A DNA stretch of 63,016 nucleotides, filler included, from Lenisia limosa (Eukaryota; Protista; Breviatea): the NCBI GenBank assembly GCA_001655205.1. It is 17 parts of 17 records of this genome, joined end to end, with 100 filler letters (N's around TTAATTAATTAA, not from the genome) between each part and the next. Parts side by side here need not be neighbours in the genome. Positions count along the whole stretch, not along the records: positions 23,727 to 30,018 come from LPNZ01006459.1; 16 more parts are not named here. One strand, 5' to 3'. This document shows, piece after piece, positions 3,025 through 30,225 of the stretch. Position numbers and translations under genes: made by a program. Below the pieces are notes generated by a model. The model ran no database searches. It had not been told where the DNA came from and saw only the letters and a program-made list of their open reading frames with translations. Position 1 is the stretch's first letter. Each line of letters starts with the position of its first letter.

Positions 3025-6000
3025 CCGAAAGCCTTGCAGTGAGAGAGATTCGGCCGATATCGCCAAGGGCTACTCCACCCTTCCCTTCGTCCAACAGATC
3101 TGAGGTCTTTTCCGAGGCTACTAACAAATCGTGCTGCTCCACTAGCTCAACCTGAAATGTAACTCATTTGTGAAAATGAGATAGCGGAGTAACAGCCTTC
3201 AAATACTGAAACTCAAAATAGGAGGGGTCACCGGTTGACCAGGGGGAATAACAGTCAAATAAAATACCAAAACCGTCATGAAAAACCCATTTAACATCCT
3301 ATGTAACGCATACTTGGATTGCGTCGTCCATAAATTTGATTTGGTGCAAGCTTTTGACCGCATTTGCTATAACGATAAGAGAAGTAGGTGGGTGGGGGCT
3401 TCGTTTTATTTTGCCCAAAAAGCCCCATCTCGGTTTGAACCGGAGCATAGTAGACTAAGCATCATTTTACCAGTCTTGTTTGTAATATAATATAAGACAA
3501 AAGGTACAGCTACGTCAAGGCCCGAACCAAATAGTATGAATCAGTTGCCAGCAATTATACAATGTGCACAAACAACAAAACATTCTCATAGCGCTAATAG
3601 TCCAAAACTGACACCAGCGTGAAGCCCCTCAAACAGGCATCGTACGGGTTAGTGTACTGGATATAGGCCCAACTGGACGCCTGACCTGGGGGGTCAGAAA
3701 AAAGGAAGAAAACTGCCTTCAATCGCAAGTGAGACGTATTCGAAATCCAAGAGCCCCCCCCCCCCCCAACCCCGGNNNNNNNNNNNNNNNNNNNNNNNNN
3801 NNNNNNNNNNNNNNNNNNNNNNNNNNNNNNNNNNNNNNNNNNNNNNNNNNNNNNNNNNTGTAAGATGGAAAAATTATGAAACAAAAGACCCAAAATCAAC
3901 TCGCTGGCAACACACAAGAGTTGATAACAACAAAACAAACAAAGCCAGGCTGCAACACCGCATCCCATCACTCCAGCGTACGTAAAATAGAAAAATTTAT
4001 GAAACAAAAAAGCCCAAAATCAATGAAACGAGGGAAATTTCAATAAGAATACGGCGTAAAGGTATTAATCATGAAGCAAAAAAATCTGTAACACCAAGCA
4101 AAAGCACCACATGAAAACTAGACTTGAAAACAAGATGACACAAACACANNNNNNNNNNNNNNNNNNNNNNNNNNNNNNNNNNNNNNNNNNNNNNNNNNNN
4201 NNNNNNNNNNNNNNNNNNNNNNNNNNNNNNNNNNNNNNNNNNNTAAACCTGGGGGAGCAAGGAACTATTCTGGAGTCATCCTGAGGAAGGAATAATACCC
4301 CACCACTCCCAACCGATCTGTTTTGCCTCAATTTGTCCATATTGACCTCGAGGGATTTCACTGACACTAAAGGATCAGATGTGAACCGAAGAGGATCACG
4401 TGCTAAAGACCAACCAGATCGGAAGATCAGGAAGACAGTTTTAAGGATTATTTGCTCTTTTTGACCAAAATCCTTTGGCTCGGAGGCCAGCTCCACCCAC
4501 CAGTGCGGTTGCCGATTCTCGAGCCAGTCACAGCCACTGCGCGCAACGCAATATCCATGTCGTCAAAGGACACGAATCCAATTTCTGGGGGAGGGGGGGT
4601 GAATTGCTAGGGNNNNNNNNNNNNNNNNNNNNNNNNNNNNNNNNNNNNNNNNNNNNNNNNNNNNNNNNNNNNNNNNNNNNNNNNNNNNNNAAAAGCACAC
4701 AAACGACCCTCTCCACCTTTGGAATATCCTTTGGAGTTAACAGGAATTCGGACATCAGTGATATGGCCAGGGTAGCATCTGTTAAAGTACCTGGGGGAGA
4801 AAATAGGTAAAACGAAGGAAACATGGTCACTGATTACAACCAATATCAAGGAATCGCGAAGTAAACAATCCAAGAGGTATCGAATAGAACCATATCACTC
4901 CTCACTTATAAAGGTCATCCTCAGTCAGCTCCTCGTCCAGGTTCAAAACACGGACCGTGCACAGGTCCCGCCTGTATAACTCCTGGAGGCGAACTATCGG
5001 GTTAGAAAATTATTAAACAAAAATAAACCCCAAAATCAATTCTGCTGCTAAGCACCTGAGAGAGAGCACATGATGGTTGAAAACAACAAAAAAGCCTTGA
5101 CCAGTCGCGGAACAAAATACACAGATCAGATAATCGATTTTGCATCTCTGCATCCCAAAAAAAGACTTCAAATAAAAACTACGTCCTCATCACCAGTCCC
5201 CTGCCCACTTTCTTCAATTTCCTGACCGGACATTGCTGGTGGTGATCTTTGCCGTTCCTCTTCATACTGTTCTCGGGGTATGGGACTGGGGGATCTGGGG
5301 GGGTATGAAATAATCAGCTCTGTTGTCAAAGCATTTGAGAACACAGATGGTTTAACATGATATTAAAAAAACAAGAAAGCAAACTCCACCTGCACTTACT
5401 ACCCCATATGCTTGCTTGTCTGAGATTGCAGATGATATATTGATAAAGTTTCAAAATGTTATTCTGTTTCAGGGTAACAAAAGACGCTTAAACAATACCG
5501 CCCCTTTTTAGATGTTCGCACCTGCTACTATCCGATTCCGACTCGGCCACGCGGTGACCGGCCTGCTTGTGTCGCCGCGAGAACGTCATTTCCCTCTGTC
5601 CAGCCGCATCCTCCACCTAGGGTGTCAATCTGAGGAGCAGGAGAAAGTGAATAGATTGTGGGTGCTCCTGATCCAAATGACCAAAATTTCCAAACATAGC
5701 AAAAAAAACCCAAGAAGGGGTGAAGATGAGTAAATGGTGGGAGGAAGGAGCGAGGAAGATATTTTGCAACTATGTTAGCAGTTATTGCATAAAGCCTAAG
5801 AAGTCACCCTGAGTGGTCTTGACTGGCCACTGAAGTACATATCATGAATCTGACCATTGTAGGAGAACATATGGTATGCTACGCCCAAGCTGCATTATAA
5901 GCGTGATGGTGACATAACCTTGTATTATTTCTCATATCACCCGTGTTAGAATGGCAGCCAGTATTTAATACTCTCTAATAATCGATCCCAATAAATGACT

Positions 6001-6859
6001 GAACTCGATAAGCTCTCGAATATCCCGATTAATCACCCTTAAATGTTGACATTTTTCGATCTATTTCCTTAGTTCTCAGTTATTGTTGCGTATGAAAATG
6101 ACGTCTTGTAAATGTATAATATGAGCCAAATAACTGTTCACAACATTTTGCGTATATCGATAACATACATAAAAATATATGAAATTTATGCAGCATAATG
6201 AGTGACGCATATTCAAGACGATTCATCAAAACATACTACAAACTCTGATTGGGAAATTAATGGACCCTACAGCTCAATATGCTGTTGTGTTCTTCTGTGT
6301 ATACTAAGGCTTGGAAGAGAGGAAGAAGAATAAGAGGAAATGAGGAATAGCTATGTAGCAAAGAAAATGAGTGAGGTGAAACTTTGCTCTATGTTATAAA
6401 GAGGAATCATCAATTTCCCTCTTAAAACTTGAGCCAAGGGTTACAAGACCAGAAGATTAAATAGAAGAGTATTTTTAAGGAAATAATTCATTGAAAGGTC
6501 CCGCAGACACTTCACCCAGATCTGAACCCAGTAATACTCCAACATCAATCATCCACGCTTACCAGTTCACTATCATCAGGGTTGCGTCGTCTCTTCTGTG
6601 CTTTCAGCTTCCTCTCCAAAGCTTGAGCCTGGAGAAGCTCCCTCAGATCAGATTTCCTGAGAAGGTAAAGTCTGCAGGATATTTAATAGTTACCTACTTC
6701 ATTGTATATCAGAAATACGTCTTAAGTGAAAGAAGGTAGGGTTAGAGATCTAAAGCAGCATTTGCAACTTAGAAAACAGTTCCCCTTTTTGCTTATAAAA
6801 GGCCTATTTTTATTTAAATTTCAATTATTGCTGTACTCCTTCAGTAAAACTCTGCTCAT
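3025..6859 (-). CDS. RRM-domain RNA-binding protein (5' part; at least one full and one partial RRM)
   Basis: Joined exons give LCTVRVLNLDEELTEDDLYKYFNRCYPGHITDVRIPVNSKGYSK-IGFVSFDDMDIALRAVAVTGSRIGNRTVSVKSL, with RNP2-like TVRVLNL and RNP1-like IGFVSF. A second RNP1-like WAYIQY lies at about 3610-3685. Proposed start MSRVLLKE/LYLLRKSDLRELL is phase-compatible. Confidence 0.8.
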
Positions 6860-7313
6860 CTGTTTTTGAGCCAATTGTGAGCACCATAAAAACAATTTCT
6901 TTATATAGTTACGGATTTAGTAATAGACTGGATTTCCTATTGATGGTTTGCAACCCCAGGTCATTTTTTAATAATCCTTCAAATTTTCCCCATCCGCCGC
7001 CGGGTCCTCCTCTCTGGTTCCAGATAAGAAGATGAAATCGGAGTTAGACCCGCCGGCGAACAGGAAATTCAAATTTTCATTTGAAATTTGAAATTTTCCC
7101 GCACCCAGCCACAATACCAGGACTAAACTTAACGTTATTCAGCTATTGTATGCAAAGGAAAGAGGATAAAAAGAACTTGCAGCAAAGATATCACAGACAA
7201 CAATTCCGAATCACGGAAGTCCTCCTCTTTTTTGTATATAGCAACAGAAGCTGAATCGCGCAGAGACTGCACAAAGGAAGCAAATACACTCAATTTGAGT
7301 GGAACAGGCCACA

Positions 7314-23495: not shown

Positions 23496-23866
23496 CTGCG
23501 GGTTTAGGGATTGCGGATGAATGAATAAAAGAAAGAAGGAAGGAAAGAAAGAAAGTAAAAATGAAAGAAAGAAGGAAAGAAGGAAAGAAGGAAAGAAGGA
23601 AAGAAGGAAAGAAGGAAAGAAGGAAANNNNNNNNNNNNNNNNNNNNNNNNNNNNNNNNNNNNNNNNNNNNTTAATTAATTAANNNNNNNNNNNNNNNNNN
23701 NNNNNNNNNNNNNNNNNNNNNNNNNNATCATAAATGACACGGTTTCTCATAAATGACACGGTTTCCGTGCAGCAGCATATATATATCAAATTTGTGTGTG
23801 TGTGTTATAAGTATTTTTATGTCCATATCGTATGTATTGACACACATAATATGTATATATGTATAG

Positions 23867-24461
23867 TCAAAGCTCCGGACATCATTCAAAACTCCCGGAC
23901 AGCTTGAGTTTTCCATACAAAATCACCATAAACCACCCAAAAACCCTATTTCCCTTTTTGTTTTCGAAGTAATCTCAATCTTAATTAAAGAATGGAACCC
24001 CAATTTAACAGATTGTCAGGTCAAAACCAAATTAAGTCCCTTAGCTCTCTATTTACGGTCCAAATACTGTCAAAAACANNNNNNNNNNCTGTGCTATTTT
24101 GAGTATTTTTCGCTCAAAATTCACCATTACATAGCCAAAGCAAAGGGGAACCCGAAACCAATTACTCCGAGGGGTGCAAATTTTTGTTTCTTAACACTCA
24201 AAGAGGGTAAGATTCAGAAAAAAATCCTGTGAAAAGGCAAAAAGGGGACCCCCGGGAGACCAAATTCACGGATTTTTCACATTTGTTCAAAATTGAAACA
24301 AAAAAGTTAGGGAACATAAGGAGGGCCATTTCTCTATATATCTGTCGAAGCAGTTTTTAAAAAAACACTGACAATGGCTCAGACAAGGCGTCAACATCAA
24401 GCTGTCCGGGAGTTTTGATGTGTCCGGGAATTTTGAATGATGTCCGGAGCTTTGAGGACCC
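23867..24461. mobile_element. Non-autonomous TIR DNA element (~590 bp)
   Basis: tcaaagctccggacatcattcaaaactccccggacagcttga at 23867 is inverted as tcaagctgtccggggagtttt...aatgatgtccggagctttga ending near 24455; internal CCGGACA repeats; TA-rich flanks. Confidence 0.75.
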
Positions 24462-24736
24462 ATATATATATATATATATATATATACAGTGTATATATAT
24501 TGAGATCAGAAATATAACCAGGTTGTATCACACTAACACGCTGATACGAGATATTGGATTACTATTAATTCAACTGAGTATGGATAATATCAACTTACAT
24601 ATATCACATCATATTATATGATATAAATGTAGAGGATATAGTGCTGAAGTAATAGTCAGTATCATACTTGCTTAGACGCATTGCAGAAGCCTTGCCTTCT
24701 GTTCCATCAACAAACACACNNNNNNNNNNNNNNNNA

Positions 24737-27020
24737 CTCATATCGGATAAGCCCTATTGAGTCCCCAATAAAGGGGACATCTTTCCCACATCCTTTNNNN
24801 NNNNNNAATAAACAAACATGATGATGGTGTAAGGAGGGCCGTGCTCTGCGCACTTGGTACATTTAAGGGCGTCAATATTGGAGCGTGCTCGTTTCTTGAC
24901 CCAAGTGTTTTGAAGAGACTTGAAGGTAAAGTGTAAAACTACAAAAGAGCCGCTTAGAATCAGCCCCAATCTGACATGTAGGGACGATACACTCTTCCCT
25001 GTCCAGTTGCGGATACGGGACACAGCCTTCTTATGGAGCGGGCGAAGGTCAGAAATGGAGAGAGCGAGGGAATAGGTTGCAACATGGGTTGGCTCATATC
25101 GGATATGCCCTATTGAGTCCCCAATAAAGGGGACATCTTTCCCACATCCTTTACACACACTATCAATGATTAAGGAATGTTATACGCCAAAAACACCAAC
25201 AACTTGTGACATGGCGTGTAGAGAGGCTAGCAGTGAATAGAAACCCCTTTCGTCCACAATTGTTTTCAAGCTAGATATATAAGTCACTTTCTATCTTTGT
25301 ATTTTCCTTGGCATACCTCTTCTGAGTGGCACCAATGGCACTCACTCTCAGCCAATGTGGCATTATCTCGAGGTGGATCTAAATTTACAGTTAAACCGTT
25401 TGAGTTGTACAGCAACCCATATCGAGTTTACCCTTTTCAGCTTCTGAAAGGGTGGTATCAACAGAAAGACCAAAATAGCCATGATTGTCTACACCATAAG
25501 TTAATACAGAACCAAACCCTTATCATTGCCATCATTGTCGTCATCAGATCCAGAATCCGACCCTGAGCTGGACTCGTCATCNNNNNNNNNNCGGATCTAA
25601 AATTACAGTTAAACCGTTTGAGCTGTAAAGCACCAACCCATATCGAGTCTCCCCTTTTCAGCTTCTGAAAGGGTGGCACCAACAGAAAGACCAAAATAGC
25701 CATGATTGTCTACACAATAAGTTAATACAGAACCAAACCCTCATCATTGCCATCATTGTCATCATCAGATCCAGAATCCGACCCTGAGCTGGACTCGTCA
25801 TCTGCCAGGATCTAGTTGGCGTAAGGATGGCTTTATGACTGCAGCAGAGTTCACGGCAACTGCATGAGTGATGACCTGGATAGATCAGTCAAGCACTTTT
25901 AAAACCATTTGTAGTAGTCTAAGTCGCATTAGGCAAGGAAGTTGGGAGATTAGTTAACGAAAGAAAATGGATAATTATTGGGAAACTACCTGTGTGTGGA
26001 AATGAAATGAAAAATCTGTCCAGAAAACTCCTTAAAATCATCACAAAAAAAACACTTCCAGGAAAACGGTGACGTGAGAATTAACGTTCAACTCAGCGGT
26101 GTTACAATATCACAGAATATATGGATTTTATTTGGTCAGTAAAAATAGCCAACCTGATTTCGATTTTCGGACGATGACAGGAAGGGCGGGTTCTACGGAG
26201 CCTGTTTGATAAAATATAAATCAACTCTATTGCGTCAACATTATGAAGGGGTTGAATAAGAATAAAAAAGTGACGTAGCAGAAATACGTTTATGTGTGTG
26301 TAGTTATTTCGTTTTCAGACACATATGTTATGTTGACATCCAAATAAGGGGGTATATATATGTCTATAGATGATATTATGAACTGCAACTCACAAACCTG
26401 GTGCAGGGAAAAAGACAACTACCTCGACTAACTGTTTCACTTCTGAGATCTAACCTTGTTAAAAAGACAAGAGGTTTTNNNNNNNNNNACCAGGATATAG
26501 TTGGCATTGTGCTCAACAAGGATGGCTTTGTTACTGCAGCAGAGTTCACGGCAACTTCATGAGTGATGACCTGGATAGATCAGTCAAGTACTTTTAGAAC
26601 TATTTGCATGAGTCTTAGTCGCATTAGGCAAGGAACTCCTTAAAATCATAAAAAAAAAAACACTCCCAGGAAAACGATAACTGAGCGGTGTTGCAATATC
26701 ACATATGAATTTTATTTGGTCAGTAAAAACAGCCAACCTGATTTCGATTTTCGGACGATGACAGGAAGGGCGTTCTACGGAGCCTGTTTGATAAAAGATT
26801 AATCAACTCTATTGGGTCAACTTTATAAAGGGGTTGAATAAGAATAAAAAGTGACGTGAAATACGTTTATTTGTTTAGTTATTTCGTTTTGTTGACATCC
26901 AAATAAGGGTATATATATTATGAACTGCAACTCACAAACCTGGTGCAGGGAAGAAGGCAGCTACCTCGACTAACTGTTTCACTTCTGAGATCTAACCTTG
27001 TTAAAAAGACAAGAGGTTTT
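24737..27020. repeat. Tandem diverged duplications separated by 10-N gaps
   Basis: 24737-24796 matches 25092-25151; 25370-25581 matches 25592-25803; 25803-26478 matches 26489-27020, with substitutions and indels. Confidence 0.8.
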
Positions 27021-27279
27021 TACATCAATATGATGGACTCACCACAACACGCCTTGACGCAGGCTCTTCAGCCAATGAAGGGTTATGGGTGAAACCGGTT
27101 GAGCCTAGCAGATCACGTAGCAAACGCTAAGACCAATGGTGTTCGTCCTTTGTCGCGATTGTCCTTGATTTAGACTTTTTGACAACAAATGCCAGATTTG
27201 GATCTTTTCCAATGAGAGGGTTGCCGCTCATGGTAGTGTATCGGGGTTCTCAAAGTACCATTTTTTCTCCTCATCAGTT

Positions 27280-27760
27280 GCGAATAGAAGCAATTTGCTG
27301 CCATGCTGCTTTGACGTCACTCTTCTCAGCGTCGGGGTCCTTGGCGATCTTGAACTGAGCCAGCAACTCTGGGGTATTCACAACACATGAGTAGAGAGGG
27401 ATGCTCGGTCGTACGGTTCGATTCAGCACGAAGCTCGGTCTTCAGAAGACCGAATATGACCAAATCTAGAAGTTGTGTGCATTGGGATGTCTGGGAGGGT
27501 AAAGCGTATATTACGATATTGTGATGTATAAGGGTCTCCAAAAAAAGCAAGACCAAAATGAGAAGGGTGTCCAATCAAGCATGCTCGATCCTCCCGAGTG
27601 AGTCCCTAGTCTCGCCCTGTCTTCTTCAACTTCCTTCACAAAATGATCGCACCCCCACTCCGTACATGAACGCATTGTCTGAAGATTGTCGTCTTCAATC
27701 TCTTCTTTCTCCTTCTAGACCTTTTTTTGAAAATAGTTTTAGAAGTTAGAGAAGTGAAAT
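27280..27760 (-). pseudogene. Decayed pogo/Tigger-type DDE_1 transposase
   Basis: With frameshifts reads EW..HFVKEVEEDRARLG...MLD/GHPSH...FLETLIHHNIVIYALPSQTSQCTQLLDLVIFGLLKTEL...KAAWQQI. This matches the pogo motifs LDGHxSH and LPxxTSxxxQPLD. Confidence 0.8.
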
Positions 27761-28047
27761 CTGTTATTGGGCCGAAGTGATTGCTATTATGATAAGGATT
27801 TTGATTAAGATTATGTTTCAGTATCGTCTCTTTATACCATTGCCTCTTTGTAAAATTGGGTCTTTTTTGTTCTGTCTGAGTAGATTGTATTTTAATGAAT
27901 TATTTTTGTTTTCAAAAAGAATCCAACTTGAAATTCCGTGTTCTATTTTATCATGTTTTTAACTGCTGTTTGTTTTTCTGAATATACAATGTCTAATATT
28001 ATATTTATGGATTATGAGAAATTCCGTCTTTTTTTTTGGAGTTTCAG

Positions 28048-29963
28048 GAAACCCCTCCCACCCCGATCGATTTACTGACAAGTGTAGCATCTACTGGATT
28101 CACGTCAATTCACCCCCGCGAAAACTACAATCACATTTGGACCCCCGAGGCAAATATTAATGATCTTGCACAGAAGGTTTGCTTACGCTTCATGTTTAGA
28201 TGTTGGTGGATTGTTTTGTACATGCGGATTGTTTTAAAAATATATTTTGACTCTTTGTTGAGTGTTCCGTGCAATTAATTGAAAATTTAATTTCAAAAAT
28301 AATTAATTGCACGGAAATCTAATGGGATATGGTAGCCCTTGTTATGACTTCTTCAGCATTCGTCTGTTGAAGCGGAAGAGAAGTTTTTGCAGTCTTTCTC
28401 CATTCCCCCTCTCAACTGTGCCAACTATGTAGGCTACACTTTTTTTGGGTGTTTCTTTTTTTGTTGTTCAGTTAGCGCCGAATCTCTATGATCCTTATTA
28501 TTCTTATTATTTATGTATTTATTATTATTTTTGTTTTTTATTGATTTCTTCTTTTTTATTTTGGTATTATTAGTATTATTAGTATTATTAGTATTATTAG
28601 TATTATTATTAGGATGAGGATGATGATGAAGAAGATGATGATTATAATCAAAAGAATAGTGATATAAAAAATAGAGAATACAGTAAATTATTTATTGAAA
28701 CTAAGAAAAAATTTGAACAAGGAAGGTGATGATGATAATCATCAACAAAACACAACCCCCACATATCATCATTGTTCAAATTTTATCTTCTTTTACAGGT
28801 TGATTTACGCCCGCTCCTCCCCATTCTCTTGCTGTTGTTTTATTTTTAAAAAATTTCCACTCCACTCGCCGCCACCCTACCTCTGTTTTCTATTTTTATA
28901 CGATAGTGGCCTTCTTTTACTGTGGTATTAAACAGTGATTGAAGTATACCTGCTTTGGTTATTGTACCCAGATAGATTTTATCTAACCTCTTCAGGTACG
29001 CTGGAATGATGGGATGTGGGGCTACAGAAGCGGCTTTGTTTGTTTTTGTTATCAACCCTCGAATGTTGATCTGGGCTTTTTTGTTTCATAAATTTTTCTA
29101 TTTTACTTCATCGAAATTTCCTTCGTTTTNNNNNNNNNNNNNNNNNNNNNNNNNNNNNNNNNNNNNNNNNNNNNNNNNNNNNNNNNNNNNNNNNNNNNNN
29201 NNNNNNNNNNNNNNNNNNNNNNNNNNNNNNNNNNNNNNNNNNNNNNNNNNNNNNNNNNNNNNNNNNNNNNNNNNNNNNNNNNNNNNNNNNNNNNNNNNNN
29301 NNNNNNNNNNNNNNNNNNNNNNNNNNNNNNNNNNNNNGATGGGGAATATGTCAATAGTAAAGCTGTTATGAAGTGAGTCAAAGGGGGATTTGCGAAAGTG
29401 ATTACCTACTTATAATAAACAGTGGAACTCACCCCAAATTGCGAGATTTTCTGAAATTGATAAGTATGGTGAAAATTTTATACTTATTAAGGTATAATAC
29501 AACAAATGGTGCTTTTCCGTATTATGAATGTTTTTTATTTTTTTGACTGGTATGATATTTATTCCTGGGATAGGTGACGGGAGGTTAGATATGTTTGTTT
29601 TTTATTTTGTTAGTGTTGATTGTTTGAATGATTTCTGTCTGTAGTATATTTTTCGAGAATTTTTCGGTTGTTTCGTGGGTATTTTCGAGGATTATCATCT
29701 ATTTTCGTACGAATTGAAGCCCTGCCATTACCCTACCAGACATAGCGCTCATCTTCGGTTCAAATAACGAATAGTTTCTCGATAACTTCTCGCAAACTGA
29801 CGATATTTTACCATTTCACGATCTTGAACCAACCGAAGTGAAGCCTTGCCATTACCCACCAGGCAAGCAGTGAACCTCGGCGCATCAGGCGTGTCTGTAA
29901 CTCCCTGGGACTCCGTATTGGTTGTTGCTACGACTTCAGCTGTTATGACTGTTAATCCGGATG
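28048..29963 (+). CDS. Uncharacterised multi-exon protein fragment (possibly beta-propeller)
   Basis: Exons ETPPTPIDLLTSVASTGFTSIHPRENYNHIWTPEANINDLAQK, DGEYVNSKAVMK, WNSPQIARFSEIDKYGENFILIK, QAVNLGASGVSVTPWDSVLVVATTSAVMTVNPD. Confidence 0.55.
28996..29130 (+). mobile_element. Introner-like element A starting exactly at a 5' splice site
   Basis: cttcag then GTACGCTGGAATGATGGGATGTGGGGCTACAGAAGCGG...GGGCTTTTTTGTTTCATAAATTTT, running into an N gap. Confidence 0.65.
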
Positions 29964-30225
29964 GTGGGAGAGGGGGCTAATGGGTAGTATTAACAGTATT
30001 ATCAAATCTTGTGACACTNNNNNNNNNNNNNNNNNNNNNNNNNNNNNNNNNNNNNNNNNNNNTTAATTAATTAANNNNNNNNNNNNNNNNNNNNNNNNNN
30101 NNNNNNNNNNNNNNNNNNTACTATCATTATAATTATCAGCAGACTTGGGTAGAGGCTTTCTTCATATTATACCCCTTAAAATCCCTCATAGAGTGCTACA
30201 ATATAATTAGACCCCCCTCCCCCGT

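Follow-up and report, generated by a model that had tools for sequence, protein, structure and literature searches.

A sense-oriented intronic repeat of Lenisia limosa that may be laid down from its 3′ end as a splice-acceptor cassette

Bursts of intron gain are attributed foremost to introners, and the way in which single introner families move is mostly obscure. Introners have been reported in 5% of surveyed genomes by a pipeline that demands similarity near both intron boundaries, and families without target site duplications (TSDs) or terminal inverted repeats (TIRs) are on record (PMC9860276). Introners stem from many kinds of transposons, about 5% of the classified ones from non-long-terminal-repeat retrotransposons (PMC12130899), while the introner elements of Micromonas have 3-nt TSDs and TIRs (PMC11282704). 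In this study, we analyzed a repeat of about 150 nt, here called the A repeat, of which one copy starts at position 28996 of a 63,016-nt stretch of DNA from Lenisia limosa (GCA_001655205.1; this whole stretch, joined from parts of 17 records, is called the window), and which an earlier note made from the window alone had interpreted as an introner. We give about an even chance to the reading that the A repeat is an abundant, non-autonomous, sense-oriented intronic repeat laid down from its 3′ end as an acceptor cassette.

Like introners, the A repeat occurs in many unrelated genes in near-identical, sense-oriented copies with splice signals, and at least one of them makes up a whole intron within an open reading frame (ORF; L017:10001-10159, with L016 to L025 denoting the sampled contigs described below). 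Groups of introns with similar sequence, the term by which introners are delimited in PMC9860276, are present in the A family. Measured against the similarity at both boundaries that the same survey demands, however, the family is mostly similar at the 3′ boundary only, so that few copies would qualify and the family as a whole would not. Also unlike introners, most A copies are 5′-truncated or form stacks in longer introns, at the 3′ end, and in contrast to the Micromonas elements with their TSDs and TIRs (PMC11282704) they show neither. The A family differs from them in that its anchoring is confined to the 3′ splice site. Intron sequence derived from repeats on a genome scale links it to the nonconventional introns of euglenids and to the introns of Fritillaria borealis that derive from miniature inverted-repeat transposable elements (MITEs) (PMC11282704). 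As in complementary-end introns (PMC11282704), many introns here have the form GT + G run ... C run + AG, the ends of which could pair; unlike those, they are canonical GT-AG introns, the G and C runs occur independently, and the element has no TIR or significant fold. The fungal introner-like elements, hundreds of similar introns that tend to degenerate both in their sequence and in their length according to PMC3609843, are comparable in this respect, but the stable predicted secondary structure described there differs from the 28996 copy, which folds like shuffled sequence (z=0.5).

A further resemblance is that to short interspersed elements (SINEs), since the A repeat is non-autonomous, about 150 nt long and often abruptly truncated at the 5′ side, with a variable homopolymer tail at the 3′ end. 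SINEs of the Alu type are moved by the reverse transcriptase of long interspersed elements and insert into the tails of older Alus, and SINE families can share the 3′ end of one partner. Similarly, A copies stack head to tail in resident tails, and the A family and a second family, V, share one 3′ end. Unlike SINEs, the A repeat has a poly-C rather than a poly-A tail, no TSDs beyond chance and, as far as the 28996 copy shows, no tRNA-, 7SL- or 5S-like head, and it is near-exclusively in sense orientation at acceptors. The element sequence was not found in full-text and supplement searches, including the supplement text of PMC9860276, and a literature search on poly-C features of introners gave nothing useful.

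Size and anatomy of the A family

The examined piece of the window (positions 23727-30018, from LPNZ01006459.1) is an AT-rich scaffold stretch with gaps and 27-47% GC. Via a protein match of its ORF 24808-25158, we reached L016, a gap-free contig of 9,146 nt in ENA assembly ERZ3820729, which represents the same locus in reverse orientation with an identity of 99.96% over 26489-29129 and of 100% over 29339-30018, and which spans the gap between these parts. A translated consensus ORF (46 aa) used as query yielded 40 ORFs on 40 contigs, all from this same assembly, and one gene call on L016 falls within a further copy of the A repeat. The sampled set consisted of L016 and nine of these contigs (L016-L025; 108,779 nt in total) and was searched by iterated nhmmer. 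Segments were scored by a codon log-likelihood, trained on other contigs and taken in the best frame, which was 0.35±0.11 for exon-like and -0.28±0.16 for intron-like segments. The share of sampled window words in the one listed RNA run was 0.00-0.02.

The search gave 78 hits (66 in the first nine contigs), equivalent to about one copy per 1.5 kb of sampled DNA; when L016 and the nine index copies are excluded, about 99.6 kb with 64 hits still remain. Most copies are 85-98% identical to the consensus. The consensus of our hidden Markov model, obtained independently, differs from the one assembled by eye in the earlier note by one substitution and one 1-nt indel before the tail, so that the family of about 150 nt proposed there was recovered with 78 copies. 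Of the 68 copies that could be oriented, 63 are on the T-rich strand as judged from their masked flanks, which is the inferred sense strand (p=8e-14). All 18 copies on L024 have the orientation of a gene for an inner-arm dynein heavy chain. The exons of this gene, some of them right behind A tails, match solved dynein heavy chains, and its nearest relatives are inner-arm dyneins of Chlamydomonas. By manual reading, this gene has about 21 introns in 9.4 kb, and the A repeat is present in roughly 15 of the 21. Other copies occupy AT-rich segments that separate coding-like parts of several genes, including one for an RTEL1-like helicase.

The load of A copies differs strongly among genes, since L019 holds a single copy in 12.7 kb; the V-ATPase proteolipid gene on this contig (4269-4580) has about 100 residues in a single exon, and V-ATPase c of the sampled contigs is nearest to plant-type sequences. 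On L025, two opposed and 5′-truncated copies (4060-4170, + strand; 4257-4330, - strand) have an identical upstream flank of 23 nt, which points to a local inverted duplication rather than to two insertions.

The 3′ end of the family, ...CCAATTTTAC followed by 5-16 C, is reached by 64 of the 78 hits. Directly behind the C run, an AG is found in 11 of 39 measurable copies, and within at most 8 nt in 26 of them. The open frames past this AG have a median of 54 codons, compared to 34 past random AGs (p=2e-6), and the 60 nt past the AG mostly have a GC fraction of 0.5-0.6, whereas that of the contigs overall is 0.41. In a GC segmentation oriented by T/A skew, runs of at least five C (C5+) are located upstream of 22 of 78 exon-like segments, and the reverse placement is seen in two. 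The claim that the 3′ ends of most copies lie at or near an acceptor is hence confirmed statistically. About half of the intron-like segments sampled end in an A-type C tract. As the branch-point consensus yUnAy fits TTTTAC, the A repeat appears to carry a compact 3′ splice cassette composed of a branch-point-like TTTTAC, a pyrimidine tract of C, and AG, and its family would mostly supply the acceptor end of introns.

At the other end, 57 of the 78 hits begin only after model position 10. This truncation is abrupt: identity to the consensus is 86-96% in the kept part, and no residual similarity is left in the flank upstream (median z 0.4; 16 of 19 flanks below 3). Junctions commonly seen are TTTTAC(C)/GTACGC, a truncated copy right behind a C run, and an internal position of the element right behind GTAC. 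Copies are stacked head to tail; directly upstream of a copy, another copy's tail is very often found. Among the 21 copies aligned to the 5′ end (model start ≤8), 14 have GT at the first base of the element, and most of these are preceded by TTTTAC(C) of another copy, not by an exon. An AG precedes the element start only in the 28996 copy, at L019:8947 and at L020:7576. The latter comes after the tail of another copy, while L019:8947, like the 28996 copy, has a solo AG/GTACGC...C-run AG form with flanks that score non-coding. In the dynein gene, a full-length copy (6730-6875) is located about 118 nt inside an intron between two homology-supported exons. Most donors are GTAAGA, GTAGGT or GT + G run with no element sequence after them.

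Only in one convincing case does the GT of the element seem to be the start of an intron, namely at L017:10001-10159. Here a single element forms a GT...AG intron of 159 nt, flanked by 56 and 84 open codons of one frame. It reads GT, G12, AGGTAATT, the A body and ...CCCACCTAG, so that it starts with GT + G12 upstream of the consensus start given in the earlier note; its flanks score 0.32, i.e. coding-like, and no Pfam match was obtained for the locus. The interpretation as an introner is therefore kept in part. The A repeat is dispersed, high-copy, intronic and in sense orientation, and its 3′ end provides acceptor signals in unrelated genes, but the statement that the repeat is itself an intron fits only a small minority of copies, with this as the one convincing case.

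Family V ends TTCATCGAAATTTCCTTCGTTTTAC followed by a C run. It has the TTTTAC + C-run end in common with family A, and its 3′ ends take the same intron position as those of A. The copies are as follows:

L021:8860-9001, L023:3403-3502, L023:6359-6443, L024:6400-6473, L024:7993-8117: V copies, ...GTTTGGAGTTTCAGATTATTCGGTTCGTGATTAGTACCTTTACGCCAATATTCTTCATCGAAATTTCCTTCGTTTTAC + C run

Direct repeats of at least 5 nt flank 4 of 34 A copies, against 1.7 (5%) expected from mismatched flank pairs, and all of them are tail motifs; repeats of at least 6 nt were found once in the 34 copies (TCTTCAG), with a control rate of 0.6-1.6% per pair. Inverted termini and target duplications beyond chance, the hallmarks of TIR DNA transposons and MITEs, are thus not seen in the A family. 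The same holds for the hallmarks of Helitrons (5′ TC, 3′ CTRR, a hairpin, insertion between A and T), as the ends are GTACGC and ...TTTTAC-Cn-AG and there is no hairpin.

Homopolymer runs are in large excess in the sampled contigs, with 87 runs of G6+ and 101 of C6+ versus about 8 expected per strand. Many G runs directly follow exon-like sequence in the form GT(N0-3)G6-16, and introns with this beginning are found for example at L024:4971, L018:3697, L018:9171, L022:1476, and L023:8551. Among 76 intron-like segments, 35 end with C5+ and 23 start with G5+, while the reverse placements number 8 and 2, respectively. Introns without an A or V body also have such ends. The G runs at intron starts may be a splicing enhancer, an insertion scar or the end of another element. 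The idea that G-run and C-run ends are the inverted termini of one transposon was rejected, because they occur independently in these 76 segments (Fisher p=0.62).

The copy at 28996

The 28996 copy is the sole copy of the A repeat in the examined piece. It was confirmed at 28996-29129, where the 5′ 21-mer of the earlier consensus is found with 1 mismatch (0 expected) together with the exact consensus 24-mer GGGCTTTTTTGTTTCATAAATTTT. By eye, it has two internal deletions; the three consensus segments missing from it do not occur anywhere in the piece 23727-30018. The features of the locus are:

28989..28995, + strand: TCTTCAG direct repeat, which recurs 6 nt past the C16-AAG end (L016 1042-1036)
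28996..29129, + strand: visible part of the A-repeat copy, 134 nt, family model ~1-125, ~93% identical over aligned columns, starting GTACGCTGGAATGATGGG
28996..29001, + strand: donor-like GTACGC after CAG, a putative donor by motif only
29106..29129, + strand: 3′ module TCATCGAAATTTCCTTCGTTTT, common to repeat family V, 96% over 24 nt
29130..29337, no strand: assembly gap of 208 N, with a true length of 158 nt according to L016 1065-908 (minus)

The C-run/AG end is only seemingly absent from this copy, because it is hidden by the assembly gap. According to L016, the gap sequence opens with A, C16, AAG, GTT, and TCTTCAG, that is, with a C-run tail and two candidate acceptor AGs. In window orientation, the completed copy reads ...AACCTCTTCAG / GTACGCTGG ... 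ATTTTACT TCATCGAAATTTCCTTCGTTTTAC C16 AAG GTT TCTTCAG / TGATAGTAACC... This nearly full-length copy is a composite, in which an A body is combined with an end of the V type.

It had been stated that this copy starts exactly at a donor. This is correct for the motif CAG/GTACGC, but the flanks score non-coding. Excision of GT...TCTTCAG would fuse two short open frames; the joined flanks have a codon score of -0.17, which is intron-like, compared to 0.35 for exons, and the peptide joined across the copy had no match in Pfam or PDB. The copy was therefore rejected as a splitter of a coding exon. Because the region is AT-rich, scores non-coding and is T-rich on the + strand, the copy probably sits in sense orientation within a long intron or an untranslated region (UTR). 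It cannot be called a separate intron on these data, and the junction 28995/28996 is best described as a donor-like motif only.

The earlier statement that no TIR or TSD is apparent applies to the family, and also locally no inverted repeat was detected (DNA fold z=0.59). The 28996 copy is, however, flanked by the 7-nt direct repeat TCTTCAG, which may be a target duplication or a chance pair. We did not accept it as firm proof of transposition, as repeats of at least 6 nt flank no other of the 34 copies and one such case would arise by chance with a probability of about 18%. An RNA gene or structured element was likewise rejected, since no Rfam match reached the threshold and the fold was unremarkable (z=0.5); the sole Rfam match touching the copy was a sub-threshold small nucleolar RNA (snoRNA) model at its first bases. 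The ORF of the copy gave no match in a protein search, the 5′ 21-mer none in viral and prokaryote genomes, and a metagenome scan with the 20-mer GGGCTTTTTTGTTTCATAAA revealed bacterial terminator-like sites only.

Mechanism and alternatives

Copying that starts at the 3′ end is favored because a fixed 3′ end is combined with abrupt, variable 5′ ends, because the homopolymer tail is variable and copies are stacked into tails, and because the second family V has the same 3′ end. New copies would start at the 3′ end and extend a variable distance toward the 5′ end, which would leave most of them abruptly 5′-truncated. Time and again, they would land in introns or copies already present, at the C tract or 3′ end of these, giving rise to head-to-tail stacks joined as ...TTTTAC(C)/GTACGC..., in which the youngest copy would adjoin the exon and supply the acceptor. 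Copying presumably occurs via RNA, and target-primed reverse transcription would be the most likely mechanism. In this case, base pairing between the ...CCCAG 3′ end and C-rich target sites that resemble acceptors would explain why copies are in sense orientation and abut exons exactly. Full-length copies start with GT, and one that lands in an exon could, as introners do, create a whole new intron, which would be a minority outcome. A more far-reaching proposal, which we put forward only tentatively, is that the A repeat is a mobile cassette of acceptor signals. It would home to existing introns at their 3′ ends or to C-rich sites that resemble acceptors, would repeatedly replace and enlarge acceptor regions throughout the genome, and would generate new introns only as a by-product.

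Several points weigh against 3′-initiated copying via RNA. Target duplications were not above chance in 34 copies, which is unusual for target-primed retroposition. There was no tRNA match and no RNA polymerase III head in the 28996 copy, and no reverse transcriptase was present among the few scanned ORFs and the Pfam-labelled gene calls, which does not amount to a systematic search. The C tract may be a target or a general splicing signal and not the tail of the element, because C5+ ends introns lacking either body; in these introns it is either such a signal or target or the last remnant of older copies. Furthermore, nine of the ten contigs were picked for carrying a copy, by which the copy density is inflated, and the calls of exons and introns, save two dynein exons, are based on a crude codon score together with GC content and ORF length.

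The repeat could also have spread at the DNA level without transposition, if the C tracts of introns are fragile and breaks are repaired by copying other C-tract introns. By synthesis-dependent or microhomology-mediated repair, tracts of variable length anchored at the C run would then spread among introns. This agrees with copies that are anchored at the C run and vary in 5′ extent with abrupt junctions, with the kept orientation and the lack of TSDs, with C5+ runs at the ends of introns without the repeat, and with the short shared bases (TAC/GTAC) often seen at junctions. Such repair would, however, leave unexplained the solo copies with their own C16 tail in non-genic-looking DNA (28996 and L019:8947), and it is hard to square with an identity of 85-98% across dozens of unlinked loci and with a defined 5′ terminus GTACGC common to 14 copies, so that we regard it as unlikely.

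We also doubt that the A repeat is a classical introner, i.e. a DNA transposon that inserted in exons and formed whole introns by its own GT and AG, with truncations and stacks as later decay. The consensus starts with GT and ends with AG, the L017 locus is a whole one-element intron in a coding-like ORF, one intron of the dynein gene opens with a diverged 5′ end of the element (GTAAGAGGGGTGTGATGAGAT), and the intron density of this gene is high (~21 in 9.4 kb by manual reading), all of which speak for this reading. Yet among 78 copies there is one convincing whole-intron element, and most donors have no element sequence after them. Truncation is abrupt and not gradual, TIRs and TSDs are lacking, and the independence of G-run starts and C-run ends argues against paired inverted termini.

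An ordinary SINE or MITE that is unrelated to splice sites and located in introns merely because these fill most of the gene space is very improbable: although the 28996 copy and L019:8947 lie in non-coding-like DNA and other, unrelated MITE families occur in the same introns, this random interspersed repeat reading is largely excluded by the strong sense bias, by 3′ ends that adjoin AG and coding-like sequence far above chance, and by C runs upstream of exon-like segments in 22/78 versus 2/78 reversed.

The A family is dense enough to study a process of intron building directly, and its anatomy is unusual, combining a fixed 3′ cassette, abrupt 5′ truncation and stacking into older copies with the lack of TSDs and TIRs. 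If copying does start at the 3′ end and home to acceptor-like sites, retroposon-style insertion would be linked to splice-site turnover. Many introns could then be rebuilt from the 3′ end without a change of position, which bears on intron-gain counts in comparative studies, and this remodelling of introns by a copied splice-site module would be largely missed by introner surveys that need similarity at both ends.

Other repeats and features of the examined DNA

The same introns commonly contain palindromic MITEs of one family, about 95 nt long (TAGGGCTTCACTTCGGTTCGAAAAAGAC...GTCTTTTTCGAACCGAAGTGAAGCCCTA). Copies are located at L021:2137-2226, L017:6583-6679, L023:8168-8260 and some 30 other places, and a fragment of 15 nt from the family's terminus is present in the window at 29831-29845. 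At L021:8172-8246, there are three tandem units of 25 nt (GCATCATGCGTGGGGGGTATATRGA), each with a GT + G6 motif.

Exact protein look-up of 12 ORFs of the window and a Pfam search of the window ORFs gave no match. For the exon-like stretch 28048-28176, no homologue was found among 1.84 billion representatives, the sole match being a spurious repeat protein. At 28698-28794, a GTGATGA/ATGATGA box is located within inverted arms of 26 nt. Several C/D-box snoRNA models were weakly matched here on the minus strand (best 24.4 bits versus a gathering score of 36), and the D box is not clear, so that this is probably a mere hairpin.

An inverted repeat of 53 nt is formed by 23849-23901 and 24421-24473, the arms of which are 89% complementary and 519 nt apart. 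It adjoins TA-rich runs, with (TA)n on one side, and is MITE-like in look and unrelated to the A repeat. In addition, tandem blocks that are 92-98% identical across gaps of 10 N were observed at 25375-25581/25593-25802, 25823-26478/26489-27020, and 24737-24796/25093-25152. L016 carries each of these blocks once, the second version being about 8% diverged. Because the gap-free contig collapses them, the blocks are probably two haplotypes assembled in succession. Heterozygosity would then be very high, or the population mixed.

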